Source: Bugula neritina
Lineage: Eukaryota > Animalia > Bryozoa
Direction: 5' to 3'
NCBI GenBank assembly: GCA_964035545.1
Contig: OZ037772.1
Span: 8,239,150-8,303,149 of the forward strand
Length of the DNA: 64,000 nucleotides
The translations under genes and the position numbers were made by a program. Positions 25,001 to 45,270 of this stretch are shown here, piece by piece. The notes under the pieces are model-generated. The model was given only the letters and a program-made list of their open reading frames with translations. It was not told the origin of the DNA and searched no databases. Position 1 is the first letter of the stretch; each line of letters opens with the position of its first letter.

Positions 25001-28000
25001 TGTGTCGACAAGTTCGGTCGCCCCCTAGTGGGAGGCGTGCAGGTAGTACGGAACTGTACCATACTCGGCCGCTCCCGGACTACCATTCACTGTAGAGTGA
25101 ACAATAGCCAACTCTCGGGGTTAGGGGTTGTCGAAGGTGCGCACAAGAGAATCCAACTCGCCAGCAGTCTTAACCGGCTGACTGACCGAGGAGAGATCTT
25201 GGTGCAGTGTGTCAACCCTTTCTCCGAAGCGGTACAATTACCGTCAGGATCCATGCTGCGCCGTTTCCACTCCATCCAGGAGGAGGATATAGGGCCGTCG
25301 CTGGGAGCTGCGACGGAAGGTCCCCAACAGAGCCCGTCAGTTAGGCGGGGGACCGTCCAACAACACGTTCAAGAGCTATACCAGGCAGCGTGTGACGGCT
25401 GCGTGGGCAACGGAGAGCGCCAGGCCATGGCTCAGTTGCTACGTGAATATAGCGACGTGTTCAGCAGTGGGGACCATGACGTAGGCCTAACGACGGCCGT
25501 TCGTCATGAGATACCGCTGGCTGCCGGGACTACCCCTATCCGACAACCTACTCGGAGGTTGGGACCCGAGAAGGAAAAGGAGGTCAGCCAATAAGTCCGG
25601 GATCTTTTGGACCGCGGCCTCATAGAGCCAGCACATGGTGCGTGGAGCTCGCCGGTCGTCCTGGTCCGAAAGAAAGACGGCAGTTGGCGGTTCTGTGTGG
25701 ATTATCACAAACTAAATAGCGTGACCATACAGGACGCCTACCCCTTACCCAGGATCGACGAGTCTCTGGACGCCTTAGCAGGCAGCAAGTACTTCAGTAC
25801 GCTAGACTTGCTGAGCGGTTACTGGCAGGTCTCCCTCAGTCTCGAGGCCCAGGAGAAGGCGGCGTTCATCACGCGGGACGGCTTGTGGAAGTGAAAAGTC
25901 CTCCCCTTTGGACTGACTTCCGCCCCCGCCACGTTCTAGAGGCTCATGGAACAGGTCCTCAGCAAACTCCACTGGAAGACACTGCTGGTATACCTTGATG
26001 ACGTCATCGTGATCTCCCCAGACTTCCAGACACACGTCAGTCGTCTGTGGGAGGTCTTCGAATGACTCAGAGGTGCCAATCTGAAGCTCAAACCCTCGAA
26101 GTGCGCTCTCTTGCAGTTGGAGGTGAAGTACCTGGGACACATCGTCAGCCGTCACGGTGTGGCGACGGATCCCGAAAAGGTATGAGCTATAGAAGATTGG
26201 GTCACCCCCCAGGATTTGACCGGACTTCGGGCATTCCTCGGGCTGGTGGGGTATTACCGGCAATACATACCAGACTTTGCGGGGGTAGTGCAGCCGTTAA
26301 ATCGGCTCACCGCAAAGGGGGTGACCTAGCAGTGGACTTCCATCGAACAGACGGCGTTCGACTGCCTCAAGGGCCGCCTACTAGAGGCCTCCCTCCTAGC
26401 CTACCCAGACCCTGCCTTGGAGTACATCCTGGATACTGACGCCAGTGACCAAAACGTCGGCGCTGTGCTGTCCCAGGTGCAGGAGGGCCGCGAAGTAGTC
26501 GTGGCCTACTACAGTAAGTTTCTCTCGCCCACCGAACGAAATTACTGCACTACCCGAAAGGAACTGCTGGCAGTAATCAAGTCGGTGAAGCACTTCAGAC
26601 CTTATCTGTACGGCAGGAAGTTCCGGCTGCGGACAGACCACGCCTCCTTGATTTGGTTGTGCAAGAGAGCAGAACCGTCCAGCCAGGTCGCCAGGTGGCT
26701 CGAGGTCCTGGCCGAGTTCTCTTACCGGATCGAACATCGGCCCGGTAAAAAACACGGCAATGCCGACGGACTGAGCCGGCAGCCGGACGAGGGGTGAAAA
26801 CAGTGTCTCAACATCGAGAAGAGGACGGGGTCTCCCAAAATCTGAGTTGAGGGCACTAGACCACCCTGGAATGGAGTATGACTGGGACCAGGGTCAACTC
26901 TGACAGAAGGCCGATACGCCTCCGGAGACTATCCAGAGTCTCCGCACCAATCCTGTCTTGACTGGTAACGTCAGAGAGCTACGAAAACTCTAGGAAGACC
27001 TCCCAGGGGTAGTAGCCGACGTGTATCGGACCAAAAAGGAGGGGCGACGACCCAGCGAAGAACAACTGCGGCAGAGATGCGCCGAGTTACGGCTGTACTG
27101 CCAACTTTGGGACTCCCTGCGGATCGGGCCAGATGGTCTGCTGACCATAACAGTGGCCACCTACAACAGCCAGTACGAGAGAGAGAGGGTGATTTGCCCA
27201 GCCGCCATTCGCCGGGAGTTAGTATGGGACACCCACAAACAGGCTCACACAGGGGTCAAAAGGGTGCTCGCCAAATTACAGCTCCGGTGGTACTGGCCCG
27301 GCGTGACGTACGGCTCAGAGTCAAGCAGTGCGAAATCTGCCAGACCAGCAAGCATGGCCGTCTCCCTGGCAAAGCGGGACGGCGTAGGCTATATGCTGGA
27401 AGGCCATGGCAAGTGGTAGCTGTTGACCTGGTTGGACCCATGCCTCTCACCCCGTGAGGAAACAGTTGGATCCTAGTATTAACCGACCACTTTACCAGGT
27501 GAGCAGACGCTCTGGCTATTCCAGATGCGTCCGCCCCGGCGATGGCCAGAGTGCTAGACCAAAATGTAATCTGCTACCTCGGACTACCCGAGCAGATACA
27601 TTCGGACCAGCGGGCTCAATTCCAATCTCAACTGTTGAGCGACCTCTGCCGCCTCTGCGGAGTAAACCAAAGCAGAACCACCTCGTACCATCCTCAGGGC
27701 AACGGGTTGGCAGAACGCAACAACCGCATGTTGGGCGACGCACTCCGCAGTCTGCTCCTCGGCCGGGGTCAGGAGGAATGGGATACGGTACTACCGCAAA
27801 TTATGCGGGCCTACCGTAGTACACCACATACCAGTACGGGGGAGACCCCTAACCTCCTGATGCTTGATCGAGAGACGCGAGTGCCCGACCACCTCGCATA
27901 CCTTATCCCCGAACAAGACTATACCATCCACGAGCATGCCAGCAAATTGATAGAGGACCTGAAGGCCGCACACGAAATACTGCGAGCAAAGCAGTGGCAG

Positions 28001-31000
28001 GTACGGCAAGAGGACTCTCAGGAACCACCCCTCTATCAAATTGGGGACTGGGTGTGGATGGTCAACTACCGTAGGCGTCGAGGACAAGCGGCTAAGCTCC
28101 AGCCCAAGTTCGTGGGACCCTGCGTGGTAGTTGAGGCGATGCCCAATCATACGTACAAGTTGGAGCGCTCTGGACAGGTCTCTGTCCAGAATGAAGCCCG
28201 CTTGAAACCGTATTGGGCTAGCCCAGGAGCAGCAGGAGAAGCCCCGCCCCCCCTCCCCCCCCCCCCCCGTTGTTGAAGCCCAGGAGGCGGACAGCAACGC
28301 GCGGGCGGCAACGACATGGACCAGAATACGAAGTGGTTGTGCCGCGGGAGGAGGACTTGGTAAGGCAGGAAAGGCCACTCCCATCAACGGAAGTGCGCCC
28401 ACCGCCCCCAGTACCCAGTCTACCCCCACCACTTCCGGATCCGCATCCGCGTCCGGAAGTGCAAACCCCCCCACCCCCCCGTGGGAGGGGCTCCATCCGG
28501 AGACAATGTCGGGGAAGAAAATACCATCACCAAAGACGGGCCAGAAACGCCACAGGTGGAGCAAAATAGCCCATCAGTGAGTACACCGCCCCGACCAACA
28601 TCTACACCACCCTCCCCAGCTAGTACGTCACCTCCCTTGGAACGGGGACAGCGTACTAGACAATCCCCAGCATACTTGAAAGACTTCGAATGTGACCGCG
28701 TTACAAATGGCAGTTACGAAAGTCTAGCTGGGCACCGTACGGAAAGACTGGCAGCAAAAGGTGGGAGTTGTGAACACCACGGGAATACTAACTTTTGCGA
28801 AGGCGAAGTAGTAGACAAAACTACTACGCCCGAAGCAAATAGTTCCAGCCGTGCGCAGCAACCACGCTGTCCAGCCTTTTCGTACGCTGATATCGTCAAG
28901 GGCAGACATATACAAACTCAATCCACTAACGTCCAAGCTTGAACGCTGAGTATGATTTCAAATGCCGGGTTCCCAGGTAAGCTTGCTCTGACCTAACATT
29001 CCCACTCATGGAATCAGGTCTAACATCAGTTAGTTCTGATTTAATCGCTCTGATTGAATCAGAACTACTGGGGACTGAGTCTCACGTGAAAGACGACGAG
29101 AACATAACTATGGCCGACGATCTACTAGATCTGGAGCTTGACACTATGTATCCCAGTCAGTCTACACGCCACGACACATTCCTTCGAGTGCCGTCTAAAA
29201 AGATGCATGACTCTCAGACTAGGAACAGTCGGTTGTCATCAGAATTATGCTGTAAAGATAACACTCGATCTAACAATAATTCTGCTCTTTTAGATACCAC
29301 TCGCTCTTCTCTCTCTCAGGACATACCGCCATCAGAGATAGCTTTGGATGAGGAATCTACCCCCGTCACGCTACCGGAAGCACTCCTAACTAAATCATGC
29401 TGAATTACCAGGGATACCAAGGCACTCATCCAGGAGCATAAAGGCGATGACCAATGCACCACCTGCCGTTTGTGTCAGCTTCATTTCACCACACCTTGCA
29501 GAATCCGAGTCCACATCCCCCAACATTATGTCACCACCTTTTGTCCCTGTGGTGAATACAGTTACCACAGGGACTACATCCTCCGTCATCAACGGACCAT
29601 GGGATGCCATGTTAGACATCTCTACGGAGTCGACAAACCCTCTTTCCCGCAATTCCTCGATCTTATCAGGCCATTCATCTCAGACCCGTCTCGCTACGAA
29701 CGGTTGCGCCAAGAGTTCCCCGCGCCCCGTATCATCACACAAGGACCTTGCCCCAAGCCCCGGGGTTCAAGACACTCCGAACGCCCCGTCCATCACCTCC
29801 CGCTCACACAGTTCCCCTTCCCAACTCCATACCTATGGTCCTGCTGCAACTCATCGAAGTGCCCCAACGATGGCGTCCCTCCCCTCCCGTTTCCCCACGC
29901 CCCTCCCGTAAGCGACGTTGGCCATCTTCATCTCCCAGTCGCCACTCTGCTCCCGCCCGGAACCTGAAGGAAACCGAAGACCAAATACGTGAATTGAAGA
30001 GAGAAGTCCATAGGTTGGCGCCTAGGATATCTGCCGCCGCTTCCGAACTCCGGGCTCTCAGCGACTCTGTGGCCCAATTGAAGAAGAGTGCCTAACTTTC
30101 CCCTTTCTTTACTTGCCCCCGTTCTCCGGTATGCCGCAGGTGGTGTCTCCCTTACAGCCCTCCATCTCGTGCCCGGTGCCATAACAAATCTCCCAGTGTG
30201 ACACTCTGATAGCTATAAGTGCCTCTTCCCGTTAGTAACACGGTGTCGTTTTCATACTGTTGTATATTTTTTTTGTATTTGTGTTTTTTTATGTACATAC
30301 CATACGCGCTCTCTCTCTCTATTTTATATTTTAAGTATTGTATTTTTTTATTAATTGTATCTGTGTTATCAGGAAGGTAGGCTCCCTGCTGGGGGGGGCG
30401 GTGTAGTGGAGCACGCAATACGCGCATCCACGTGTCCCCTAGCCAATTAGAGATGCGTCAGGTGACAACCCCCAGCGATGCGCAACAAGAGAGTAGTCAG
30501 TAGAGAGAGCGTACTAGCATTAGAAAGATGTAATACTTTTAATCCGTGTGCTTTCTTTTATCATTTTATTAGTATGTAATTATAATGAAATCTCTTCTAA
30601 TCTTATCAAAGGCCCTATCTTGCGGTGGATAACCAAGTCATAATTACAAGCTAGGAACTCACGCACAGTAATTGCACGAATTACTACAATATGAGTATTT
30701 TTATTTTAATAAGGTTTTTTTGTAATACGTTACTTATGCTTTATTTTTACCATAAGTGATGCAATTGAGGTTGTGTTTTAAACAAATTACTAATTTTAGC
30801 TAGCCAAAACACCATATTGTTGTAGTTTTGTGCACTACTAAAATTGGTTTTATTTTGTGTTGGTAATTACTGCATATCCACTGTGAGGTTATGTGAAGAA
30901 CCGAACGAGTTGATCATGTAACGAGAGAACTTTATTTAAGTCAATTACACTCGATGAAATCAGTATACATATAAAATCAAAAAAGAGTACAATAGTCGAA

Positions 31001-32037
31001 ACAAATACATATTATAGTCAACCTAGTTAGCTACTAACACTGTCCAAGACTGCTGCGGGTGCCAGAAGGCATTGCTTATATACACAGAGTGGATCCTGAT
31101 TGGATTACACAAGATTTCGGTGGTCTTGTCCGTAGTTGCTGGTGGTGTCGAGCGTAGTTACTAGCAGGGCACTGCATAGAAATGCGGCATTACTTGGAGT
31201 TGTCGTTCTTGACCATAATCTATTGAGTTATGTTTAGCAGGGGGTAATGGAGGTATACTTTCCATAACCATTACAATATTCACATCTAGGCATAATCTCA
31301 TTAATATTTTCAGACCACAGTCTATCACTGCCACATCTAATGAGTCTAATACCCAGGATCCAGGGAACTCTAATTTCAAAGAGTCTGCTTATGAAACTGG
31401 AGCTGGAACGGACGAGAAGCAAACCAGTGAACTTGGGACTGAAGAGAGTATGTCACATATTTTAATAATTGCCTTTCTTACGCTTCATGTTATCAGGCTT
31501 AACTTATTTAAACTAAATGTTGCGTGGTCTAGGGGTTAGAGCGGTTGCCTAGTAAACACGAAGGTCATGGGTTCAAGCCCGGACAAAGGCCATTGGTGAT
31601 GTTAGGAAGAGCATCCAGTCATAATTGCTCCTGCGCCTCATTTAAATAAGTCCTTAGCCGCTTTAACAAAAACCCTTTCTATCAGGGGTTTCTCACAGGG
31701 ATAGTGACTATAAACTTGCGTGAGTTGGGTTTTAAATATAGAAGTGTGTTTATTCTCGCAGACTGAGGGAAAAAAAAAATAATAAATAACAGAAAGTGCT
31801 GGATGTTTGATACTCTAAAAAGATAGCTATTTTGTGGTAGCCAAAGTCATTGTATATCAACAACAAAGAAAACCATAATGTAGCTAACATAGCTATGAGA
31901 ATATGATTATAGCTGTTTAACAAGAACTTCTCAAGCTGATGTAATGACCCAACATTAATATTCGCGTGTGCCTGCGTGTGCCTGCGTGTGCCTGCGTGTG
32001 CCTGCGTGTGCCTGCGTGTGCCTGCGTGTGTATGTGT

Positions 32038-32078
<41 letters not shown>

Positions 32079-32102
32079 TGTATGCGTGTGCATGCGTGTG
32101 CA

Positions 32103-32154
<52 letters not shown>

Positions 32155-35100
32155 TGTGTGTGTGCGTGTGTGTGTGCATGTGCACGCGCCTGTGTGTGTG
32201 CATGTGTATGTGTAGACATGTAACTAGAACTGAGTGAATCAACACCAAGAAAATGAAATTTGCGAGAGTCTTGTTGCATATAATTTTGGCAATAGTTAAA
32301 ATATTTATACATGATTAATGCCCATTCAGGTGAAATTGGAGAAAGTTTAGAAACAATGGAAAATATATCTGACTTCAATCCTAAACAAACTACGACAAAA
32401 GTCGAAAAAGAGACTAAAGAAAAACTTTCTGCTAAAGGTGAGTTGGTAATATGTTTTCAAATAAATACAAAGCGTTTCACATGGTTGTAAATTTGTGTGA
32501 AGCAAACAGTTTTTAATAGTTTGCTTTTAGAATACTTTGTCTTATTTCTAAAAAGATGCAAATTTTGTGGAAAAAATTAACTTTTTAATACCATACTTTC
32601 TATTTCAACAAATTAACTTTGGCCTTTGGCGATCAACTTTGAAGTTACATAATTTTAAGCCTCGTTTGAGTTTATCGCGAAATTTGCTAACAAATTTTGC
32701 ATAACTTTCAATTTCATTATTAAAAAGTTACACTTGATTTTGGCCTTATATAAACTGGGTAATATAATTTTGAGAGTATTTTCTTTTATAAAAAGCTTCT
32801 TAAAGTGACGGGAGACCTCAATTCTAGCTAAAATCAGTCATTTTAATTTGCCTCTCAAAACCGCTATTTTAAAATTGAAACTTCAAAATGATAAAATTAA
32901 TTTATAATATGATTCAAAATATAGTGAATTTAACATTTTTATTTATTTAGATGTTCTTCTAAATGTTATAATCTGAATAAAATAAACTGGCTCTCTATAA
33001 TTTGACAGCAGTTTCATGCATTTGAAAGTAGCGTTAAAATTTACTGACAATTTTGAAATTTAGGGATTAAATTGAAAAGCAACTAGCTGGCTTGGTAGCT
33101 ATTAATTTAATCAAATTTAATGGCTCTAATTATTCCAAAATTATTAAGCTGCCCTAACAACCTCAATTACAAAAAGTTTTAGGCTTTTTGGTTGAAAACT
33201 GGAAGTTTAAAGTAAGCGCTATTGTTTGTTTACCTAAAAGACCATATATGGTCCATTGATCTGTAGATAGTGTCGCTTTCAGGGACATATATGGTCCATT
33301 GATCGCGTAAGGGTTAAATCAAAGTTAGGCTGCTCTTGTTCTCTCAATTCTAATACAGTGCGCAATTATTGATTATTAAAGTTTTTTAATAAGATTTTGT
33401 TTTGTCAAATGCAGCTTATCTTATGTGAAAAGGCTTAGGATTTATTGCTATTGGTGGTTATTATAGATATGATTGGTAAAACTAACACCAGGATTTTGGC
33501 AATAGAAAATGTCTTAAAAATAATTCTGAAACAATGCTTGTTGAGTAGCTTATCATGGTGGAGAACAGCTAAAGGATTAAATTGAGAACCACCACTAAGG
33601 CAATTAGTGTGTTTAAAGTAAAGAAACAGTAAATATTGAAGTCAATAATATTTTACTTATCTTAACTAAAACTACAGCCACTCTGTGATTCACAGGATAG
33701 TTAAGGGCAACCTTTTAGCTGCAACTGCCTTGCTGAGGTTTGCATTGTAATCATATAAGAATTCAGTACCAGTAAAATAAAATCTCACCTAATTGTGCTA
33801 GAGTCAAAATTTAAAAACTATGTTGTAGATCTTCTTTTTCTCCAGTGTAAGTTTTTTGGAAATTTCAATTTTCATTTTTTTTGCGAAGTTATAGACAAAA
33901 AACTGCCGAATTTTGGCCAATTTTGCCTGAAAAGCTGACTTTTCAGTACCAGTAAAATATCTCAGCAGCAAAGCATGATATCTGAATAAAAATTGCACTG
34001 CTGGAATCCTGAGATATTTCTCCAGTGTAAGTTTTTTTCTTTTTTCAATAACTCTGCTAGATTGCTCATAAATTGGTGATTTATACACTGAAAATGCCAT
34101 ATTTTCTCATAAGAAACTAGCAGCGCGCAGCACTTCACGCTTCACTGAGCACGTAGGGATGAGAAGATATTGGCACCTACATAATAATTACAGGCTAGCT
34201 AACTGGCAGGCTATAATGAATAGCTTGCTTTGTACTTTGTTTATGTAGCACCAATAATGGAATGTTGATAGATAACGCAGCCCTAACGAAGGTTGCTGCT
34301 TATTGGTTGTAGTTTAATCTTAGGCTAAACAATTACAAGTAGGCAACACGCATGCCACCCGCAGAGCAATATTATTCAAGAACCCGAACTACATTTTGAG
34401 AGAAATTTATGATATTCTCAGTGAGGATGCCCTTAACTATCCTGTGTTGTTGAATTTGCTTTTTAGATAAGTCTGAACAACTTGTTGAGCCATTGACCAG
34501 AACTCTTGGAGTGACTGACTTTTCTGATGAGGAAAGCGCTATCCCAAAACATAGAAAAGGTTCGTGATCATTTCATAATTATTATAAATTTTAGTGGCTT
34601 ACTTTTATGCAATTGAGATTGTAAGAAAGTTAATATTTTGTATGTAGAAGGTTACACATGCTGGTTCCGACATTCTGGGATGGATCCAGTAGTTGGTAAG
34701 ATTAGTGAAAAAGAGACTGATACTTACTCTAAAAAGGAAATAATGAGGACTATAGGAAAATACATGATCACAGATCTAAAGATTGAGGGTGACATACCTT
34801 TGACCATTACTGAAATAGCTCCAAAAGTTACTAATCTCTGTGTCCGATCTCTGACCAACTCTAACAGTCTAGAGGTGTAAGTGTGTGTCTGTGTTTTACA
34901 TTTATACCATTTATATGTGTCTGGTTACTCAACATGACAATAAATAATATTTGTTTACTGCAGTCTCCCTCAACTCACACACCTCCGTCTACTAGACTTG
35001 TCTGAAAATGACCTGGGTGTTTTGCCTGAATGTATATCGAAGATGACATCACTCAAACACCTGTGTCTTGTGGATTGCAATTTGTCTAGATTACCAAAGG

Positions 35101-38100
35101 GGTGAGTTACTAAAATGTTTATCTCAATTCTAATAGTGCTGGTCATGTAATCTAGTATACAGAACGTGTTTAGTCATGTTCTTCCTCTGTTTCAGTCTTT
35201 CTCGGCTCCACAATCTACAGACGTTAAATGTATCTGACAATAGTTTTGACAAGGGAATGTTGCCTGCAGTAATATTGAAGATGAGCTCTCTCATTGAGCT
35301 ACATCTGGTTGATTGCCAATTACTTTCATTACGCAAAAGGTTAGTTGTTTGTTGGTTGAAAAGCTGTGTAACTAATAAACTTTAAAGTTTTGTATTGAGA
35401 GAATAAACTTGATTTAACAGCCAAGCAGCTTTCAGCTGCCACCATGACCTGAGGTGCGGCCACTGAATTTAGGTAAAAATGGCACAGGTAATAATGGCAC
35501 AGATAATAATGGAATAAGTGGAAGTTATCTAAAAATGGCAAACTTATGTTCAATTTAGCTAAACCCCAAACTCGCATTCTAAACCCCTAACCCCACCCTA
35601 AACTCTAATATTGAAACTGTGCTACTCTTACTACTTTGTTGTGTGTGCCATTATTACCTGTGCCATTACTACCTGTGCCATCTTTACCGTGCCATTTTTT
35701 ACCTGTACCATTTTTACTAGACACGGTGGCCACCCCATGGTCACACCTCAGCTTTTTTCCCAACAAGCCAACACAGGTTGGCACGTTAAGGTGCTCTGTA
35801 CCAGACACCGGTTTCACTCTGTACCCCCTTACCAGCACTACTTTTACTGGTAGGCAAATAAAAACTAGTTTTTGTTATTAGAAGTAATAATAGCTAGTAG
35901 GAAAAAAATATTAGAAGCAGTAGTGAAAATGATAAGAAGAAGTGATACTTGAAGGTAATAACCGTTATCAGAAAGCAAGATTTCAAATTTATCTGCCGCT
36001 GTTGCAGTCAAAAATGAAAAAGAAACACGAGCAAGCAATATGGCCGCTCAACGGGAACACTTAGTGGTTTGCACGTAGAACTCTCATTTTGTTTGTGTGA
36101 TTCATCTGAAAAATTTTGGTATGAAAGACATGGCTAATGTTTATTGTAGAGTCTTCACCAGTAGCATCTCATCACTGAAGCGCCTTCAAGTGCTAAACCT
36201 GTCTTTGAATAGACTTCCTACAAGTATCTTAGATGCTGTGTTACCGCCCCTGGTATCCTTGAGAGAATTGAATTTGAGCTAAAGATTTTACCAAAGAGGT
36301 ATGCCAAATATAAAAAGATGTGATTACAATTCCATAAATCTAAACTCAGTTTAGTACTAACTATAATAACTCAAAATGCTTTTAGAGCTTGTGCAGCATT
36401 GTATCCAATCGTTGTGGCAACTTACTTTTTCATGAAAGTTGAATTGTATTTGACAAGAATAATTATTTTATACAATTGAAATGAAGTTTTACTCCATTTA
36501 AATATTACATAAAACTTATATAAGAATAAAGAATTTGTTCTGTGAAGTTCTGTCCACATTCAGAAAAACTATTCAACTCCGAAAAACACAGCTGATTTTG
36601 CCTATCATCTTTTATAGAAAACCAGTGTTTTTAAAGTAGTTTGGTTAGGCAGTAGTTGAGCATGCTACAGTATTTGTCAAGCAAAAGCTTTCTTCATTTT
36701 AATTTAATCACTTTGTTTCCCAATGTGTCTGCTGTGTGCCTTTTACTAATATTGTAGTGATTTTTAGCGCGCAGTGATTTTAGATTTATTTTTCCAAATT
36801 TTTCGTTTAACTACAGTGATTTTTGTGAAATTATGTAAACCGATCTCTGCCAAAAATTGGAAGTGTGAAGGTGTCGCGACTTCCCACTAGGTTTGATGGC
36901 AACTGATTGTCAGATCCGATCGGATTTAATCGAATGTGATCGGACATGTCCGAGGCTCTGACATCTTCGCAGGAACCCTGATTTTCGGACGCAATCAGTA
37001 AAAGATTCGCGAAGGGACAATTTTCCAGTATATAAGAAGGCGAGCTCACAGAGTAGAATCAGTCTACCACTGGAGCTCACTAGATCAAGACACACAAATA
37101 TTCTTACAGCATTTAATAAATATTATTCTACTCAACACGGACAACATATCTTGTTTCTTATATTACGGAGTTATGCTTCCCTTTTAATTGCATTCTACCC
37201 ACAAAACTACTACAATATACACTCAAACTAATATTATGTATTTCTCTATTGTTTTACACGAGTGGCCTCACGTTACTATAAAACGTAATATAATGTTCTA
37301 CAGCATATCTTCACTGAGAAACCTTGAAGTGTTGAATGTCACTGGTAATGTGCTCTCTGATAATCAACCGGATAATGCATTCTCTTCTTTACTATTATTG
37401 AGAGAGTTGAACATGGAGAACTGTCAGCTGAAAACTCTTCCAAAGAGGTATTCATATCATATAATCTAATATTTCTCTTGCTGCGTTTTTTTTATTTGGT
37501 TCATATATCTGCTGTAAAAACCAGTAATAAATTTGAATGAACATGTGCCAGTTTTTATAGCAGTATTATAAAACAATACAGATGTTATCGCATATTATCG
37601 TATACGTTATCATATATTATAGTTTGTTATTTTCTCATGAATTATAGTACACATTGCTATAAATCATAATATGTGTTCTTATATATTATAGTATATGCAT
37701 GCTGAAGAATCTTGAATATTTGAATCTATCTGAAAACTATCTAAAAAAGTGTTTACCAGAAGACATGTTCATCTCTTTGCTCTCACTGCAAAAAGTCAAC
37801 CTCCGACATGCTGGACTGGACTCTCTGCCAAAGAGGTAAATCTTTCAATATTGTGCTTTAGCACTTGCACAGCCAAATAGTGTGCACAGCAAGCAAATTT
37901 AAGATTTTTCAAAAGTAATTGTCGTTTGTCTTGCTTATAAAGAGTGTGAATTTTCAAGGTTCAAAATATCAGTAGGAGCTGTTATCTCTTTTGACTCAAT
38001 TTATTTCCCATTTGTTAATAAATAAGCTTGTATTGTATAGCTATATTATTACTCAAGAGGGGCAAGTAGATGAATTTGAATGAAAATATCTTGCTTATTT

Positions 38101-41100
38101 AGTCACCAAATATAGCTAATATAGTTATTTTCCAAAACCATAATAGCTAGGAGGGAACATTGGACTAATATGTACATGTTGAACTGCATAAAAATAGGAA
38201 TGTTTGAGGCTGACTGATTATACCTTTCAGTGAACTCCACACACTAATATCTATATGTTATTGGACTTATCATTATCTTGGGAAAATATCCTTACATGCT
38301 TGATAAATAGATTAATTTTTTCAGCAAGATTAAATGCCAAACAAGTAGCTTTAGTGGAAATATTTTTTTATGTTTGTGCAATTTTTTGAAACTAAAGCTT
38401 GGCATTACTAGTTTCAACAACTATATTAATATTTCAACAACTAAATTTTATCTGTTTTTTCTTTTAGTGACTATCTTCAGTAGGCTATAGCGTAATTGAT
38501 TGCCACCACAGATATTTTGGGCTATTAATTTGTTTCTGCTCTATGATATATTATGTGCTGTTATATTTTATAGCATAGAGGGCCTTCAAAATTTGCAAAG
38601 CCTGGACACTTCAAACAACCACTTCATTCACTTACCGTCTTCTATATACACATTGAGTAGTCTACAGATATTAGACGTTTCCTACAACAATTCCTTGACA
38701 TCCTTGGATCCAGAAATATTGCAGCTCTCTCAACTGCAGGTTCTGAAAGTGGACGGCTGTTATGCTTTTACATCTCCACCACTAGCAGTATGTGAAAGAG
38801 GATTAAATGCTGTGCGACAGTACTACACAGATTTGGCTAAGGGTGCTGGTAAAAACTTACCACTTGTTACAGTGGCTGTATTAGGTAATGCACTGGCTGG
38901 GAAGACCAGTCTAATCAAAACGTTACAGAGCACTGACAAGAAGAGAATGCTGACTGACAGAAGTCCTAACGCTGAGATAGATGAGACTACAAAAGTTTTC
39001 AATGTTGAAGAAATTGAAGTAGATGGTACAGTGCTTCGTCTCATTGATATGGGAGGCCTGGAGGTCTACCACGTAACATATCAACTTACAATGAGACAAA
39101 ACTGCATACCATTAATTGTAGTCAACATGGAGCAGTATGATCAGATTTCAAGTGAGTGTCCAGTTAGAGAGGCTGTCAGAAGGCTGGCCTTTGACTTCAT
39201 GTCTCACCTCTATCTTGCTTATCCGTCTCTTGGCCCACCTAAGCTTGTTTTCACTCATAAAGACAAATTCTCAAACCTCGTATTTAGAAAGCTCCAACAG
39301 GATTTTTTCACAGTTTTACATCAGTTGTGTGCAGAAATTCTTGTAGAAGAGAAAGCATTAGGTGGTGAGGCTGTTCCAATGCAACACTTCAATGATTTAA
39401 TTGGACGAGTTTTTGCCAATGACGATATTTATGAGATTGGAAAAGAAAATGAGTACGAGGTGTTTGACAAGATAAAAAACTCCCTCCTTCAAAGCAGTCA
39501 ATGCTTTGTTAAATCTTTGCCTTTGATTTGGGAGGATGTTAATCGATTGGTTTTGTCTCTTTCATCTCCCTACAGCACTTTTGATAATATTCTAAAAACT
39601 GTACAAACAGAGCTTCAACACATTGAGTCAAGTCAGCTAGACATGATTTTCACATACATGCATGACTGTGGCAAGATTCTTTGGTATAAAGATATCAGCT
39701 CTCTTCATTTTTACATATTTCACAAAATTTCAGAGGTCACCAGACTTCTATGTGTTTTGCATCACCATGATTCAAGCATATGGCAAAGTCGAGTTGATCA
39801 ATTTTTGCCATATGTTTCAAAAGAGCAAATGTTTGTTGAAAAGGAAGACTTTGAGAGGTTTGTGAGTCATTTCACCAACACCGGTTTGATGAGGCAAGAC
39901 CTTCTTTGCTATCTAATTAGAAAAGAAACATCATTTAGCAGCGCAAAGGATGTAGAAGTTGCTGTTTGCTTACTTCAAACCTTTCGTCTGTTGCATGGTC
40001 CTATACAGGTTGGTTTCGAGGAGCCATGCTTTATTGTACCTCAGTTTTCCAATGATTACTACAGCACTTCCTACTCTCCACCGAAGAGCTTGGTCCTTCA
40101 AGTTGAAACACAGTTTAATGGATTGGCCTTACCACAGTATGTTTACCATCAGATGACTGTTGGTTTGCTGAAGCAGTTTCCTGGTGAATTTGCTGTCATG
40201 AAAGTGAAGAGAAATGGAGCTAACATCTACCAAGATGGAATACACACGCAGCTGGTACATGATAACAAGTCTAGAAAAATCTTGTTATACGTGGCATCCG
40301 ATGTTGCCAACATCAGCAGGATGTGGAAGACGCTCATCGCCACCTCCAACCACATACTGAAACCAGTTATGGAAACTTGGCCTGCAAGCAGGCTAGTCAC
40401 CGCAAGTTACTGCGCTCACTGCTTATTACTAGGACTTCCATGTCCTAAAAAGGTAATAAATCCTCGGTGGTGTCTTCGGTCCTTGAAGTCTCCCTTACCA
40501 AAGATCAAGCTGTGTAGCGGATCTTCAACCACCTTGTGTGCTGACGAGGAAATACCTTCTGCTATGGTCTACCCCTGTATGTTTATTTAACTTAATTTTA
40601 TTTAAAATTGTTTTCTTCAGATTTGAAATCTGACTTCCTAAAATATTCTATCTTATGAGAACGTAGCTTAGAGTAGACCTGTATACAAACACCTAATCGT
40701 TTCTTAGTCTACCAATAATATAGTAAAATTGAATCACCTCCATACTTTTGCACATTTTTGAGACAATGTCATTATTGCGAGTGCACATATGATATTCTAT
40801 ACGCAATTTTTGAGTAGTTTACATAAAACTAATATGTGAAAACATTTGTTGCGCAGGTGAGACAATCACAGAAGTTGAAGCTGAAAAATTGGATAAGTTT
40901 GTGAATGAACTGATGAGCCGGAGAGAAGCAAACAAAGCTTCTAAATCTGGTAAAGTACTAGTAGTTTAGGTTTAGGAATAACTGGTTTTAAAGCACTCCA
41001 ATTCTAAAAAAAGTTTAAAGTTTAAACAAAATATAGCACTCGTATAATAAAAATGGAATGAAGTTGTGAATGATTTCGCGTGGCAATAAATTATCTATAG

Positions 41101-44100
41101 GTAGTATCTTCAGTCATCATTGGTCAGTTTTATTAAGCGGTGTCATCCCAGATAGACGCTTCCTAGTTAGACGCCAGAATTGTCTTGCTTGTGAATTATG
41201 TTAGAGCAATGTAGTGCTGGATGCTTGTTTATGATAAAAAGAGTTCTCATTTTTGTAAATTGAAAGTTGTTTTAGGTTATATTCTGATTTGGAATAAAAA
41301 ATTACATAACAGTAATTCATTTGTATTTACTTTCTGGTGTTGCAAACATAAGAAGATGTGATTTTTTAATATCTTGTAATAATTGTGCATTTTGTAATAG
41401 TACCGTTCTCTTGTTATAGTAGGCCTATTCCGTAATAGTATTGCTTTCCAAATAAAGATATTTTAGTGAGTTTTAAGTATAATGCTATAGTAATAGATTT
41501 TCACCCTCTATTAGTTTTGAAGTAACTGCGTGAGTCAGTATTATAATTACTGTTGCGTATCGTTGTGAATGCTGTAATTGTAGCTAAGTTGGGCTAGCTT
41601 TCTAATGCCTTATTATTGTGATTGTTGTTAAGCTTTCAGCATAATGTAATTTTCATGAAATACGCATTTCCAGAGTTATTTTCCCTTTTTGCTATTTTAT
41701 CGTTTTGCATTAATACTGATACTGGAAATTTGTGTAGCTTTTATGAATGCCTTCAATAGGTTGTTATTATAGCTAAATTCTTGGCCTATTGAATTATTCA
41801 TTCTCCTTTGTCTACTTTTCTTTTGTTACTGTCAAGCTTAACTTTCTTTTGTCTGTTGGAACATTCTAGATGTGAATTTTTGTGTATAAAAGCAGGCGAG
41901 TTTCCAGTGTAGATTCAGACTACTACTGGAGCTCGCTGCTAGTAGGGCCCTAAGCTGTATCTGATACAATAAAGGTTATCCTCATTTGTACTCAAATACT
42001 TGGCTTATTCTTTCTAGAGCATGTAGGCACTAGTTGCATTCAGAACCCACAGTTTACTACACTATTACACATTTTTATAATTACACAGTTTTTTAAAGTT
42101 TCTTTTTTCAGCTTGTTTTAGATGTTTATGCTGTCGCTTTATTTCATTACCTGTTATTAATCACTAGTGGGAGAGTACCACTGATTTCTGTAATTTTAAA
42201 GGGACAGGCAACTTCCACTTAAGAATAAGTTAAATGAAAACTCAACAATGTTGCTTTTCTTTGGATACCCCTTCTCTAATTACAATCTTGGGTGTTCGCG
42301 GTTCATTTATTATAATATTATTGCATCGTATGAGCTGTAGTTATTATTTTGTTGCTATAGGAGAGAGCAGTGTGCACAGAGAACTAAAATTAGACTATGA
42401 TGATCTGAGTGATCTCTCCGATGAGGATGACTATCTCTACCCTGATAAGAAGGAAGTGGAGCTGAAGTTTATAAGACCCAAACTAAATCCAACTACTAAC
42501 CCAAGGATAACACAACTGTTCTCAAATACTGACAGGGTACTGACTTGCTTTTTAGTCTCAAGTTACAAATTCATTTAGTGGGCTTCATTCAGTCGATTTT
42601 AACATTAATTTATAACAGCTTCCAAGTGAATTTTTCTATGCAAGCACAAGTAAACGTACACAAGTGCAGTGCTTCTGTTTTATTGTTAAACATCCTTATT
42701 TTCAAAAATTTATTTAGGTATAACTTCAAAAATAAACATTTAAATTATTCTTTTGCAAAGCAGGTATAATTTTTTGCTTTGTAAATTTTGTTCTTGTGTT
42801 CACTCTACGAGTTTTGTAAGTTGTTCTAAATATATTGCTAAGGATATTATGAATGTGTAAGCAAGGTATATAGTATCTACCTATATTCTGTCAATAACCT
42901 ACATTTAGGTGTACAATATGACACGAAAAAGAGGAAGAGCTTTGATAATAAACAACAAGAACTTTGATGAAAGACCAGATCTGTGTAGGAATGGTTCAGA
43001 TGTTGATGTTGAAAATTTATCTACCATGCTGAAGGCCTTCATGTTTGATGTTGTGACACACACAGATCTAACGGCAATGGTACATGTTAAACATATACAC
43101 TGGTTTTTAGCCTTTGGTATAGTTAATAAATAGTTGCATAGCTTGTCTTGACAGAAATTTGAGTAAACTACCTACTATTTCATTTTATTTGAACAAGTTA
43201 GAACTTGATTAGCTTCAAGAATTGCCCCTATATGGGAGATTTTGCGGTTTTCAAAATTAAAATGGTTTTTAAATAACACCAACAAAAGGTTTTAATTCTA
43301 AAATGTTTGCACTATAAAATCTTTTAGGCTATTCTGTTAACCATCAAAGATGAAGTACAACGTAAAGAACACGAAGACCTGGGATGTCATGTGTTGGTTA
43401 TCATGAGTCATGGAGGAGTGAATAACTATATCTATGGTGTTGACATGAAAGTATTCAGGCTGACAGATGTGTATGATCTACTGACACCTCTGAACTTTCC
43501 AGCCATGGCTGGGAAGCCCAAAGTTGTGATTATTGAAGCTGCTAGTGGAAGTGAGTGGCACATTTACTATATGATGTGAAACTTGAAATACTTTAAGGTT
43601 TTGCTTGGAGTCTCAGTTGTGACGCATCACATATTTCACATCTTTATATTTTTATTATCCATTGCCGGAGTAAAGCTAATTATTTTGACTTGATAGAATA
43701 TAATGTTATGTTGTATCATATTTCATATATTCCATTTATAATATCTAATAATCATACTATTCAGTTGTTTCTAAAATTGAATCATTGTCACTATAATAGT
43801 TGAGTTTTAGGAAGCTTGCTGTGCAGGTGAATATTTTCATTTTCAAGCAATCAGAGGCCTACTATATGTTACAGCAAGGACAGATGTTGGTGAAAGAGGT
43901 ATAAACCGAGCACTTGATCTTGGACAAGCTAAGGTTGAGGATTCTGTAGTAGCCAAACCTGTTGGAGTTTCTGGGGCTAAAACTGCTGAAGCTCTAACCA
44001 GACTGAATTATGATGACCTGTTAGTAATGAAGTCAAGTATGGAGTGTAAGTACTGGTGTAGTTTGCATAGCAGCCATAGTATGAATAGTTACCAGACGAA

Positions 44101-45270
44101 TCAGGGTCATTTTGACGAACATTAAACCCATAATAAAAGTATTAGTTGCGGCCTTTTGACCACTTTGGAATTTGCATAAAAGGAGATCCCATTTTAAACA
44201 AACCAAATTAATATTTTGGAAAATAGTATAAAAACAAAGCTATATACAATGAAATTAGCACAATTGAAGAAACCACATAGCCTAAGTGAGCAAATAGAAG
44301 CAAAGTTTTATACCTTTCAGTCTAAAAAATAGTGCAATTTTCAGGAAGAAAATTATTTTTTATAAAAGGGTCAATTGCTTTTTAAACAATATTATTAAAT
44401 TTGGCCACTGGTGCAAATAATGGAGAAATGTTACTTCAAGTTGTTTGCATGTTCCATGCCATCGGTTGTATAGATTATACATATTAGTTATATGCGGCTA
44501 TATATGTGGCTAAATGTGTGGCTAAATGTGTGCGTGTGCGTTCTTGTGTATGCATATATACGTATGTATGTATGTATATATAATTATATTGATTTCTTCA
44601 CATTTAAATTTTATAATTGCTAAATTTATTATATTGATTGTAATAATTATGCTAACATGCATCAATTAAATCGTTTTTTCTTGACATATTTTGTTTAATG
44701 TCCTTCAGCATACTTGCGCATACAAATGTTTTTTGGATGCATTTCTAAAATTGAAAAAACGCTTACTCTTTACTCACTTGTATTGTAGCATTTGTATCAC
44801 GCCGTCACCCGGTATATGGATCTCTAATGATTAGAGCTCTGGTATCGTCCATGTACACGCATGCCTGTCACCATGATCTCTACACCATATTTAAACAGGT
44901 ATTTCCATCTCTACAACTTTTTGTATGTGCATCCATTGACCATCTTGTTCATGCAGCTTGTTTTAAAATGTCTCACTACCATGCACTTTGCTAATAGCCA
45001 ATAGGAGTATAATATGATCATTTTATATAAATTGTAATGCTGAGAACCTCGTGTGATTTGCACACACCTCTGATAGGCTGAGTTTTATATATTTTATTGG
45101 AGTATAAAATTACTAGTATGTGGAGGGCGTGGTTAACTATTTAGGTGCAGACCAAAGTGAGGAAACTGTGTGTAGACAGAAATCTGCATAGTGGACAGCT
45201 GGTTGTAACTTGGGACACCCTCACTCACATGAGAAAACTTTACCTCTTTCCTGGTTTCAACGGCGAGTGA
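6256..45270 (+). CDS. Multi-exon LRR-ROC-COR (ROCO family) protein with a duplicated N-terminal helical module and a C-terminal catalytically inactive caspase domain; 5' end outside window
   Basis: Phase-consistent GT-AG exons: 6256-7010, 7122-7192, 7470-7532, 7955-8079, 10265-11016, 11221-11294, 11536-11586, 11844-11944, 12098-12154, 19922-20147, 20446-20514, 20646-20717, 20867-20935, 21130-21198, 21441-21509, 21597-21665, 21851-21919, 22227-22295, 22396-22464, 31314-31447, 32330-32437, 34467-34559, 34651-34876, 34964-35101, 35196-35339, 37304-37447, 37692-37835, 38574-40576, 40857-40949, 42361-42536, 42909-43079, 43328-43550, 43875-44045, 44789-44898, 45145-45270 (TGA). Total 7103 nt plus 1 upstream base = 2368 codons, with no internal stop if the broken exon 36165-36298 is skipped. 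Confidence 0.7.
8349..8697 (-). mobile_element. Solo LTR related to the element C LTR
   Basis: TGTAGT...ACTACA termini, 4-bp TSD ATAG (8345-8348 and 8698-8701). Both ends resemble the reverse complement of the 23116-23402 LTR ends. Confidence 0.85.
8930..9270. mobile_element. Non-autonomous foldback/MITE-like element (AATGGCAC-array inverted arms around an AACCC-rich core); other copies at 5036-5260 (cut by element A) and 35471-35720
   Basis: GGTAAAAATGGCAC-type units on the left, GTGCCATTTTTACC-type units on the right, found at three places in the window. Confidence 0.7.
9046..11005 (+). repeat. Copy 2 of the ~2-kb duplicated block
   Basis: See 5036-6996. ORFs 6273-7040 and 10282-11031 are near-identical. 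Confidence 0.95.
10265..12154 (+). CDS. N-terminal module copy 2 (4 exons) plus a basic linker exon 12098-12154
   Basis: Exons 10265-11016, 11221-11294, 11536-11586 and 11844-11944 have the same intron phases as copy 1. The linker reads DPKTQKKKAQKRKDAPPSK. Confidence 0.8.
14822..19385 (-). mobile_element. Intact Ty3/Gypsy LTR retrotransposon (element B, Mag-like)
   Basis: Identical 121-bp LTRs (14822-14942, 19265-19385; TGTTG..CAACA). 5-bp TSD TTTAG. PBS TGGTGACCAGTACG next to the 5' LTR. Polypurine tract at 14943-14953 (minus strand). One uninterrupted ORF. Confidence 0.97.
15159..19223 (-). CDS. gag-pol: Gag-Pol polyprotein of element B (probably starts at MAKFNPP)
   Basis: Two Zn knuckles (CGRCGHNTHRFGKC, CHKCQKRGHFARVC), protease LDTGAD, RT HMDD, RNase H TDAC/EQEALG, integrase HHCC plus DLF/DNGPQY/EAERAVQTVK. 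Confidence 0.96.
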   Translation of the reverse strand: MPSAVLGFLFLRYCQFTVMAKFNPPAEFDFLPEKWAEWAKRWSRYRQISKLDKEEEGIQINSFLYCMGPTSESIFSSLGLSEENKKKYNEVLAGFENYFSPKKYVIYERAKFFKRDQQQAESVEHYIRALNELADKCDFGDKRSEQIRDRLVVGIADQGLSREMQKMDIDQLTEATAVAMARQAEQVDKNVKELYNDVKSLDAVRVSSSKHKHSTQQSKAANSAQADANPCGRCGHNTHRFGKCPAQDSVCHKCQKRGHFARVCRSKGGAVQSVEENDYDQPTSNVEPCNKGQYFLGEVTDRDVNVEWTKSVVVDQLLVPVRFKLDTGADVTIIPQQLCKSVQLKQPDKSLFGPSNSQIPVLGYFDSTLSVGRYKVADRLYVVAHNKALLSRRACVGLGLVSCNTQLDCVTESADKFRNEFPSLFSGLGKMSQEAEIQVNTGSPPHAICVPRSVPYPLLDKVKAELDEMVELGVTFSVSEPTDWCSPMVIVPKASGRIRICVDYTQLNKVVRREVYPMAHVDSSLAKLGNGKVFSKLDANSGFYQIPLSKSSKLLTTFLTPFGRYAYHRLPFGLSSSPEIYAKVVSQVLCGLEGVIVHMDDVCVWGNTVEEHDARVRAVLRRMSDAGMTMNSSKCEFSKSSIKFLGHSISDKGIQANPEAVQGIRDFRTPRSVSDVRSFLGMANQLSKFTPKLAELSRPLRDLLCKTSPWFWGEAQSIAFARIKEELSKDFVLAAYDPKAETTIQTDACRNGIGAVLLQLQPDGSKRVVAAASRALTDTEMRYATIEQEALGVVWACTKFRNYITGITVKIQTDHKPLIPLLNEIELDKLTVRIQRFRMRLMRFAYVVEHIAGKDNVLADALSRSQASPSVDEVAFVEEVELAVKEGHKLFASSQRLVQLAKLQRADEVLAQVIKFVETSWPEYLTNQDILLRPYFESRSLISIQDGLLALGDRIVIPQVERLEVLRTIHQGHLGVTKCRARARQYVWWPGISQQIADMVRQCNTCRMHANVVVEPLMVAEFPQRPWEKLGSDLFFVHDRWYLLVVDYYSRFVEVALLAELTSKEVISHMRSIFARHGVPDVLVSDNGPQYASHEFKLFVSSYQFAHVTSSPKHPQANGEAERAVQTVKSLLKKETDPYLALLAYRSSPLENGLSPAELLMGRKLKTTVPALPKLLIPQPVERLAVQEKEELKRSQVKENFDIRHKVAQLPPLKRGDRVRIRDLNRDAVVIQQCAPRSYTVQDTGGTELRRNRRSLTPTHSSPVMSLASDLAVQFKDQPIHSSPRQTTVFGGQAQQSPSDSRLDVQPRERPVSPHQAFVPLDRAKQTHSVSSSAVRLSKTRSGREVRAPLKLDL
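19922..22464 (+). CDS. LRR block 1: cap exon plus nine single-LRR exons
   Basis: Eight 69-nt exons and one 72-nt exon, all phase 2-2, each encoding LxxLxxLxLSxNxLxxLP (e.g. LSQLIFLRSLNVSHNRLRALPE). The last has an NNPL cap-like ending. Confidence 0.92.
20231..20290 (+). pseudogene. Decayed remnant of the LRR exon that is intact at 34964-35101
   Basis: ACACACCT..ACTAGACTTGTCT.AAA.T.ACCT.GGT matches the intact copy. The acceptor CAG is missing and an in-frame TGA is present. Confidence 0.7.
21992..22052. repeat. (GCGT)n microsatellite
   Basis: Read directly from the sequence. Confidence 0.95.
23464..24465 (+). CDS. gag: Gag of element C
   Basis: Lies after the PBS. Zn knuckle CWRCGTRGHRRSSC. 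Confidence 0.85.
   Translation: MAESAASTEEGERDIIINSLGAEEEAYKYTLEAPVFTGLEDVEQFIREFREVAAITRWPPRVALIKLRMALTEQAKPYGLRPSVDGIIAALRARFGIPVADAKARLQGLLRKTCTPFPDHPTLVKRLAQIAYSDLPETHRRRYTFEAFVQSLNDLDLHHQLQARGVTTIEAAIQESEAYLGAEQLYRTVKAIPQTTREPDHPVRVAAATTSPSLEIEVDRLMTMLGQLVATITYSNPMEYKRPTVKTPRPATRCWRCGTRGHRRSSCPRPRKQQKPHDPRKPPELRGPKQRGKRGGYRQASVRTRRYALHQWQTLRRNQPARTTTRTLLTASH
24659..28942 (+). pseudogene. pol: Disrupted pol of element C
   Basis: Protease LDSGC, RT YLDD, RNase H and integrase fragments, with numerous stops and frameshifts. Confidence 0.92.
29008..30095 (+). pseudogene. Accessory ORF of element C: acidic N-terminus, two zinc fingers, Pro-rich segment, coiled-coil end
   Basis: ORFs 29008-29403 and 29470-29967 share a frame and are separated by one TGA. 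CRLCQLHFTTPCRIRVHIPQH fits C-x2-C-x3-F-x5-I-x2-H-x3-H, followed by CPC-x12-H-x5-C. A heptad-like tail lies in ORF 29748-30095. Confidence 0.7.
31522..31726 (+). mobile_element. tRNA-derived SINE, copy 1
   Basis: A-box-like TGGTCTAGGGG and B-box-like GGTTCAAGCCC, then a ~140-bp body shared with 56278-56489. Confidence 0.8.
31964..32214. repeat. (CCTGCGTGTG)n plus (TG)n compound microsatellite
   Basis: Read directly from the sequence. Confidence 0.95.
33691..34446. mobile_element. Non-autonomous DNA transposon, CACTA/EnSpm-like termini
   Basis: 23-bp terminal inverted repeat CACAGGATAGTTAAGGGCA(A/T)CCT, flanked by TT on both sides. Internal direct repeats. No ORF. Confidence 0.7.
34651..37835 (+). 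CDS. LRR block 2: duplicate cap exon plus double-LRR exons (138-144 nt, phase 2-2)
   Basis: Cap exon 34651-34876 is paralogous to 19922-20147. Exons 34964-35101, 35196-35339, 37304-37447 and 37692-37835 each encode two LRRs. Confidence 0.9.
36165..36298 (+). pseudogene. Frameshifted double-LRR exon (10 nt shorter than its 144-nt sister exons)
   Basis: Intact AG/GT ends. Reads ISSLKRLQVLNLSLN...LRELNLS then TAA. LKILPK resumes in another frame. Confidence 0.85.
36753..37214 (+). mobile_element. Solo LTR (distant relative of the element A LTR)
   Basis: TGTAGTG...CTACTACA, TSD ATAT. The 3' half shares TATA.AAG.AGGCGAG, ACTGGAGCTC and TTGCATTC..CCCACA with the element A LTR. Confidence 0.85.
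38574..40576 (+). CDS. Large exon: final LRRs plus ROC GTPase plus COR
   Basis: LRRs and an SPP..VC..G...VRQY cap. P-loop GNALAGKTS (38884-38910), G3 DMGG (39046-39057), ROC-type G4 THKD (39253-39264). COR-like YMHDCGKILWY, FIVPQF and a terminal CAHC. Confidence 0.93.
41489..42061 (+). mobile_element. Solo LTR of the element A family
   Basis: Near-identical to 4474-5035. TSD CTAT (41485-41488 and 42062-42065). First base is A rather than T. Confidence 0.93.
42909..45270 (+). CDS. Caspase (peptidase C14A) domain, p20+p10, pseudo-enzyme
   Basis: VYNMTRKRGRALIINNKNF..RNGSDVD..DLT; VIMSHG; GKPKVVIIEAASG (QACxG position); DDLLVMKSS; SRRHPVYGSLMIRAL; TLTHMRKLYLFPG. Five exons. Confidence 0.93.

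Follow-up and report, generated by a model that had tools for sequence, protein, structure and literature searches.

Analysis of a 64,000-nucleotide stretch of the genome of the bryozoan Bugula neritina (hereafter the window; gene coordinates refer to positions within it) showed the presence of a gene on the + strand, at approximately 34680-45270, in which leucine-rich repeats (LRR), a Roc-COR GTPase and a caspase domain are combined in one chain. The codon of the catalytic Cys of the caspase domain encodes Ala, while the catalytic His and the motifs that define the fold are retained in the rest of the domain, its exons are open, and relaxed purifying selection has acted on it since the loss. 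The most probable reading, to which a probability of about 0.6 is assigned, is that the gene encodes a functional, non-cutting pseudo-caspase, the domain of which was maintained after the Cys had been lost. A pseudo-enzyme was also proposed by the first-pass annotation, made from the window sequence itself, and this proposal agrees with the results presented below.

Translation of the p20 exon (43328-43549) places GCT, encoding Ala, at 43541-43543, the codon position of the catalytic Cys of caspases. The motif EAASG (43535-43549), which closes the p20 segment of caspase exon 2, matches QACRG of CED-3 column for column in phmmer comparisons with solved structures, in which caspase-8, -2 and -6 have the same motif as CED-3; the site of the nucleophile is thus taken by Ala. 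The match of caspase exon 2 to CED-3 has a phmmer E value of 4e-10, and Peptidase_C14 (PF00656) was recognized by Pfam in caspase exon 1 (E 6e-10), exon 2 (E 5e-10) and exon 4 (E 0.02). The catalytic His motif SHG is intact at 43406-43414, in the context MSHGG, and aligns with SHG of CED-3. In paralogs the Cys is encoded by TGT or TGC, and GCT is separated from TGT by two adjacent base changes, which bears out the distance of two substitutions given in the first-pass annotation. Residues of the S1 pocket, corresponding to Arg179, Gln283 and Arg341 in caspase-1 numbering, are represented by both arginines, namely, the Arg of CRNGS (42987-42989) and the second Arg of SRR (44803-44805), and by Glu in place of Gln in the window gene and in most close paralogs. 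The retention of the arginines had been correctly anticipated; the reading of EAASG as an inactivated form of QACxG holds for the change of Cys to Ala, but not for that of Gln to Glu, which is typical of the family and is carried by dozens of Cys-bearing paralogs.

Since the change of the nucleophile codon from TGT or TGC to GCT removes the thiol, the domain is predicted to be proteolytically dead. No caspase is known to cut without a catalytic thiol, and caspases with Cys mutated to Ala or to Ser are in standard use as catalytically dead controls; a CED-3 chain in PDB entry 4m9r has QASRG at this motif. By fold and sequence, the product of the window gene is a homolog of the caspase family lacking the catalytic Cys, and so is probably not an active member of it.

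The replacement of Cys by Ala is real and does not result from a base-call artefact. A read-derived contig of run X1 (1906 nucleotides, depth 45) matches the window without a difference at 42939-44844, including the codon in question; X1, which may be the assembly’s own sample, is the sole run covering the codon at ≥95% identity. A protein search with the open reading frame of exon 2 revealed a JGI reading frame, P0047 (54 residues, 93% identical), which ends with EAASG followed by the same intron read-through; its contigs, L158 and L159, come from two JGI samples of another study and hold a diverged copy of this locus with the sequence GCT GCT. The window locus is the best and the only intron-spanning match of L158 and L159 in the reference genome, and both contigs carry the allele of run X2 (2016 study) at every difference shared by both data sets. 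Both copies carry Ala, and the loss of Cys therefore predates their split. Metagenome scans with a DNA pattern around the codon and with the exon 2 protein as a query gave no match. The read contig and the independent samples show Ala, where the first-pass annotation had left open the discovery of Cys in the reads. An alternative exon supplying QACxG, which it had likewise considered, was searched for and rejected, with a single p20-like exon found in the window at E ≤ 0.01.

The caspase domain is encoded by five exons, in agreement with the earlier statement that all five are open. Exon 1 (42909-43079) contains the start of p20, exon 2 (43328-43550) contains SHG and EAASG, exon 3 (43875-44045) encodes the variable segment that links the large subunit to the small one, exon 4 (44789-44898) encodes p10 with SRR at 44797-44805, and exon 5 (45145-45270) ends with TGA and was assigned with the help of paralog transcript contigs, which join exon 4 to this sequence. 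Together they comprise 801 nucleotides, i.e., 266 codons and TGA, with AG/GT borders.

Comparison of the caspase exons of the window with those of L158 over 187 codons revealed 30 non-synonymous and 19 synonymous differences, with a non-synonymous divergence (dN) of 0.073 and a synonymous divergence (dS) of 0.161. Their ratio (omega) is 0.45 and is significantly below 1 (p = 0.011). The changes are located mostly in the inter-subunit linker and loops, the core segments are identical, and every splice site is conserved. Insertions and deletions are distributed unevenly: 26 events were found in 1455 intronic nucleotides, and one event, an in-frame one of 6 nucleotides, in 569 exonic nucleotides, against approximately 10.2 exonic events expected from the intron rate (P = 4e-4). 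On the terminal branch of the window gene, distance-based branch fitting gave an omega of 0.20 in the caspase exons, against 0.145 for the whole tree, and of 0.16 in the Roc-COR exon, against 0.158. Private changes at invariant columns, three in the caspase exons and one in the Roc-COR exon, are not in excess. Values of 0.2-0.45 were thus obtained in place of the dN/dS near 1 that the first-pass annotation had associated with neutral decay. Judged from these alignments, constraint after the loss of Cys is about threefold weaker than in the family as a whole but clearly present, which fits a pseudo-enzyme.

The divergence between the window and L158 is mosaic along 43186-45209: intron 1 differs by 4.4%, and introns 2-4 differ by approximately 19-27% and contain many insertions and deletions. 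A second 2023 sample, run X4, differs from the window by only about 4% in intron 3.

Upstream of the caspase exons, the gene model was built from searches run exon by exon, the consistency of the frame being judged from exon lengths. The putative first coding exon (34680-34876) begins with ATG at 34680, has an open frame and a GT donor, and is followed by an intron after the second codon base; a weak match to it (36% identity, E 3e-4) is located upstream of the Roc-COR exon of a paralog. It is followed by five LRR cassette exons: L1 (34964-35101, 138 nucleotides, of symmetric phase, with AG/GT borders, an open frame and the LRR consensus), L2 (35196-35339, 144 nucleotides), L3 (36165-36298, 134 nucleotides), L4 (37304-37447, 144 nucleotides) and L5 (37692-37835, 144 nucleotides). 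L3 is broken, as follows from the alignment of the five LRR exons, its translation and frame bookkeeping. The large exon (38574-40576), lying within an open frame of 696 codons, encodes the final LRRs together with the Roc GTPase and a COR-like region. It contains the Roc P-loop GNALAGKTS (38884-38910), the switch II motif DMGGLE (39046-39063) and the G4 motif THKD (39253-39264), so that the P-loop, DxxG and N/TKxD motifs are all represented. Pfam recognized LRR in this exon, with Roc at 26.8 bits (cut-off 27) and a weak COR-A at 16.6 bits (cut-off 35.3); relatives pass the Pfam cut-off for Roc, and COR-A, which is below the cut-off in the window copy, is recorded in more distant relatives. 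Two linker exons, the first (40857-40949) with AG/GT borders, in phase and kept in paralogs, and the second (42361-42536) encoding an acidic stretch, precede the caspase. A death effector domain (DED) was not detected in the window gene by Pfam. The exons without L3 sum to 3840 nucleotides, i.e., 1279 codons and a stop, and inclusion of L3 breaks the frame.

A number of observations weigh against the pseudo-caspase reading and favour its main rival, according to which the gene is dying: catalysis would have been lost first, and the reference allele would now be a mostly intact-looking null. L3 lacks 10 nucleotides relative to its four sister exons, which results in a frameshift and a TAA at 36280-36282; the exon lies upstream of the interval covered by the read comparison (42300-45000). 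At switch II, the codon CTG (39058-39060), likewise upstream of that interval, encodes a Leu unique to the window copy, while 34 of the 40 relatives have Gln (CAG or CAA), four have Asn and one has His. In p10, the reference allele has Thr (ACG) at 44857-44859, a site at which all paralogs, runs X2 and X4, and L158 have Lys (AAG); by this comparison, the non-synonymous change is confined to the reference haplotype. Between the two Cys-less copies, omega (0.45) is raised about threefold over the family value, and a period of neutral evolution in one of the lineages could account for part of it. No gene-specific transcript was seen, the mapped RNA-like contigs carrying paralog mismatches, and on contig 8 the gene stands alone among Ty3/gypsy retroelements.

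Nevertheless, a dying gene is the less probable reading. The Roc-COR exon of 2 kb, both linkers, four of the LRR exons and the five caspase exons all have open frames and intact splice sites, exonic insertions and deletions are strongly depleted compared with introns, and omega is significantly below 1. Since the LRR cassette exons are symmetric, skipping of L3 restores the frame. In Cys-bearing paralogs, a heuristic check likewise flagged two of 40 LRR exons as apparently broken. Further impairment of the reference allele may result from the L3 frameshift, given that a product of 1279 residues requires skipping of this exon, and from the switch II Leu. In Ras, the substitution Q61L impairs GTP hydrolysis; by analogy, Leu at the switch II Gln is predicted to impair GTP hydrolysis in the window protein. 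The Roc region of the other lineage was sought in order to date the change of Gln to Leu, and only paralogs turned up, with the best at 75% identity. Because only the window copy has Leu at this position, the suggestion of the first-pass annotation that the caspase domain is regulated by GTP is in doubt.

The genome surveyed (216,009,554 bases) contains 138 p20-like exons and at least 76 Roc-COR exons of the same type, 74 of which have no stops. The order of LRR, Roc-COR and caspase is the same in every close paralog examined, and the window gene is accordingly placed, by sequence, in a family specific to the lineage and comprising at least 76 genes that encode LRR, Roc-COR GTPase and caspase in one chain. 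Literature searches returned no account of a fusion of Roc-COR with a caspase. All 29 nearest paralogs, with exon 2 identities of 64-82%, have the Cys, in the form E[T/V/A]CSG or QACSG. Judged by this alignment, only the change of Cys to Ala is private to the window gene among these paralogs, and Glu is a family trait that does not indicate inactivation.

Other losses of the nucleophile were found among the 138 exons. Ser encoded by AGC replaces Cys in eight copies with EASSG or EASNG on contig 6, and Ser encoded by TCC in two EASSEG copies on the same contig; these Ser copies are located at 2.6-6.2 Mb (L046-L053, L090, L100). At 32.59 Mb of contig 1, one copy (L102) has Tyr (TAT), in the motif ETYKG. 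A second Ala copy, with LEVASG and the same change of TGT to GCT, was found outside these exons, in a JGI metagenome contig (locus L160, 148-345), the closest match of which in the reference genome, a paralog on contig 1 at 33.27 Mb (93% identity), keeps Cys. As seen in these sequences, the nucleophile has been lost at least five times independently in the family: twice to Ala, twice to Ser and once to Tyr. In the eight-copy Ser clade, omega calculated from exon 2 alone is approximately 0.2-0.25 at dS of 0.3-0.45. These Cys-less paralogs resemble the window gene in belonging to the same family, in having lost the nucleophile independently and in having open exons; they differ in representing separate lineages, mostly with Ser, in tandem clusters, whereas the window copy is isolated on contig 8.

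The Ser copies are also relevant to a second alternative, namely, that the domain is still a protease in which the nucleophile is another residue, such as the adjacent Ser of AASG; the Ser clades would by analogy be serine-type caspases. The retained His, the Gly of the oxyanion region and the S1 arginines, together with purifying selection on ten paralogs having Ser in place of Cys, are compatible with this. However, the nucleophile position itself is Ala in the window copy, the adjacent Ser is present in all Cys-bearing paralogs and so does not compensate for the loss, and the mutants mentioned above, as well as the QASRG of 4m9r, speak against it. Activity through another nucleophile is therefore very improbable. 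Least credible of all is the view that the Ala codon arose through an error of sequencing or assembly, or is a rare variant, somatic or allelic. No support was found for it beyond the coverage by one run that may be the assembly’s own, and it is contradicted by the identical X1 contig at depth 45 and by the same GCT GCT in the diverged copy from two JGI samples of another study.

Some features of the family were observed apart from the loss of Cys. Most close paralogs (L002-L030) have Glu at the Gln position of the S1 pocket (ExCSG), and the equivalent of Arg341 varies among them, the motif being represented by SKR, SKI, SKS or AKV; therefore, the ‘caspases’ of the paralogs may not be specific for Asp. 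In tandem neighbours on contig 6 at 13.88/13.89 Mb (L009/L038 and L010/L039), the caspase exons are near-identical and the Roc-COR exons are approximately 50-60% alike. The Roc-COR exon of the window gene groups with copies of contig 5 and contig 3, and its caspase exons group weakly with copies of contig 4 and contig 6; these discordant domain groupings suggest domain-level recombination or gene conversion.

The window gene is a singleton on its chromosome arm, located amid retroelements. The first-pass annotation had raised the possibility of a sensor/executor pair; this was rejected, as no partner gene adjoins the window gene, and a second family member is absent from the window and its vicinity. 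Open reading frames of the Ty3/gypsy type, encoding reverse transcriptase, RNase H and integrase, and integrase fragments flank the gene at 1632-4124 (+ strand), 15162-19223 (- strand) and 24000-30000, where the content of guanine and cytosine (GC) is about 57%. The blocks of high GC content in the window are explained by these elements. At 31940-32240, a long microsatellite-like tract rich in CA/TG gives rise to spurious His/Thr and Cys/Val open reading frames on both strands.

Among proteins with solved structures, the closest to the window gene are CED-3 and caspase-8, -2, -9, -3 and -6, with which it shares the p20/p10 layout, SHG and the S1 arginines; these matches cover exon 2 of the window gene and the caspase domain of its relative from Watersipora. 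It differs from this group in having Ala in place of Cys and the family-wide Glu in place of Gln, and in the replacement of the CARD or DED prodomain by a ROCO module. The ROCO proteins, including LRRK2, LRRK1, DAPK1, MASL1 and the bacterial and Dictyostelium Rocos, are similar in having an LRR array followed by Roc, with the P-loop, DxxG and THKD, and a COR-like region, but their output domain is a kinase or a death domain, whereas that of the window gene is a caspase. The same architecture of LRR, Roc-like GTPase and caspase, together with the same C-terminal motif, was found in an ‘uncharacterized protein’ of Watersipora subatra (P0043, NCBI/UniRef; 1176 residues). It is 33% identical in Roc-COR and, in contrast to the window gene, has QACSG with Cys, and DYAGHD at switch II.

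The long form of c-FLIP, c-FLIP(L) (CFLAR), is a paralog with the caspase fold that lacks the catalytic Cys and acts by pairing with its active enzyme ancestor (PMC7586951). In FLIP(L), both residues of the dyad were lost, His being replaced by Arg315 and Cys by Tyr360, and this protein is described as the sole human pseudo-caspase regulating active relatives (PMC7586951). The window gene likewise encodes a caspase fold without Cys that is kept by selection, and FLIP is taken as a working model. FLIP is recruited via tandem DEDs, whereas the window protein keeps His, has Ala at the nucleophile position, contains no DED and is fused to LRR-Roc-COR. The likeness is thus one of functional analogy only, and a heterodimer of the window protein with an active caspase is putative.

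The sequence of events proposed for the pseudo-caspase begins with the change of the nucleophile codon from TGT or TGC to GCT in this lineage, by which the caspase domain would have become dead as a protease. After this loss, the His, the core strands, the splice sites and the frame have been held under relaxed but significant purifying selection. ROCO proteins dimerise via COR, and caspases are activated by dimerisation; because of these two properties, the most likely role of the protein would be to pair or compete with active paralogs. It may act as a FLIP-like partner modulating the activation of paralogs, or as a sink for ligand or substrate. On this basis, a FLIP-like partner or a competing sink would be the most economical mechanism. 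The FLIP-like modulator, the substrate trap and the decoy named in the first-pass annotation are candidate mechanisms.

A wider proposal can be made only tentatively. Protease-dead ROCO-caspases may be recurrent, selectively maintained regulators or decoys in a bryozoan-specific family of LRR, GTPase and caspase receptors, involved in immunity or colony allorecognition. The window copy might then be a hydrolysis-deficient, non-cutting scaffold nucleating or poisoning mixed oligomers with active paralogs, and the logic of FLIP would have arisen independently on a ROCO chassis.

Few caspase examples are known among pseudo-proteases regulating active relatives. The genome of B. neritina represents a natural series, in which dozens of active-looking LRR-Roc-COR-caspases are present together with several independently inactivated ones, and sequence evidence indicates that selection maintains at least two of the dead lineages. 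Should the live copies be modulated by the dead ones, control of caspases based on dimerisation would have evolved independently outside the system of death-fold adaptors, and the function of a candidate family of immune or cell-death receptors in a colonial animal would become testable.

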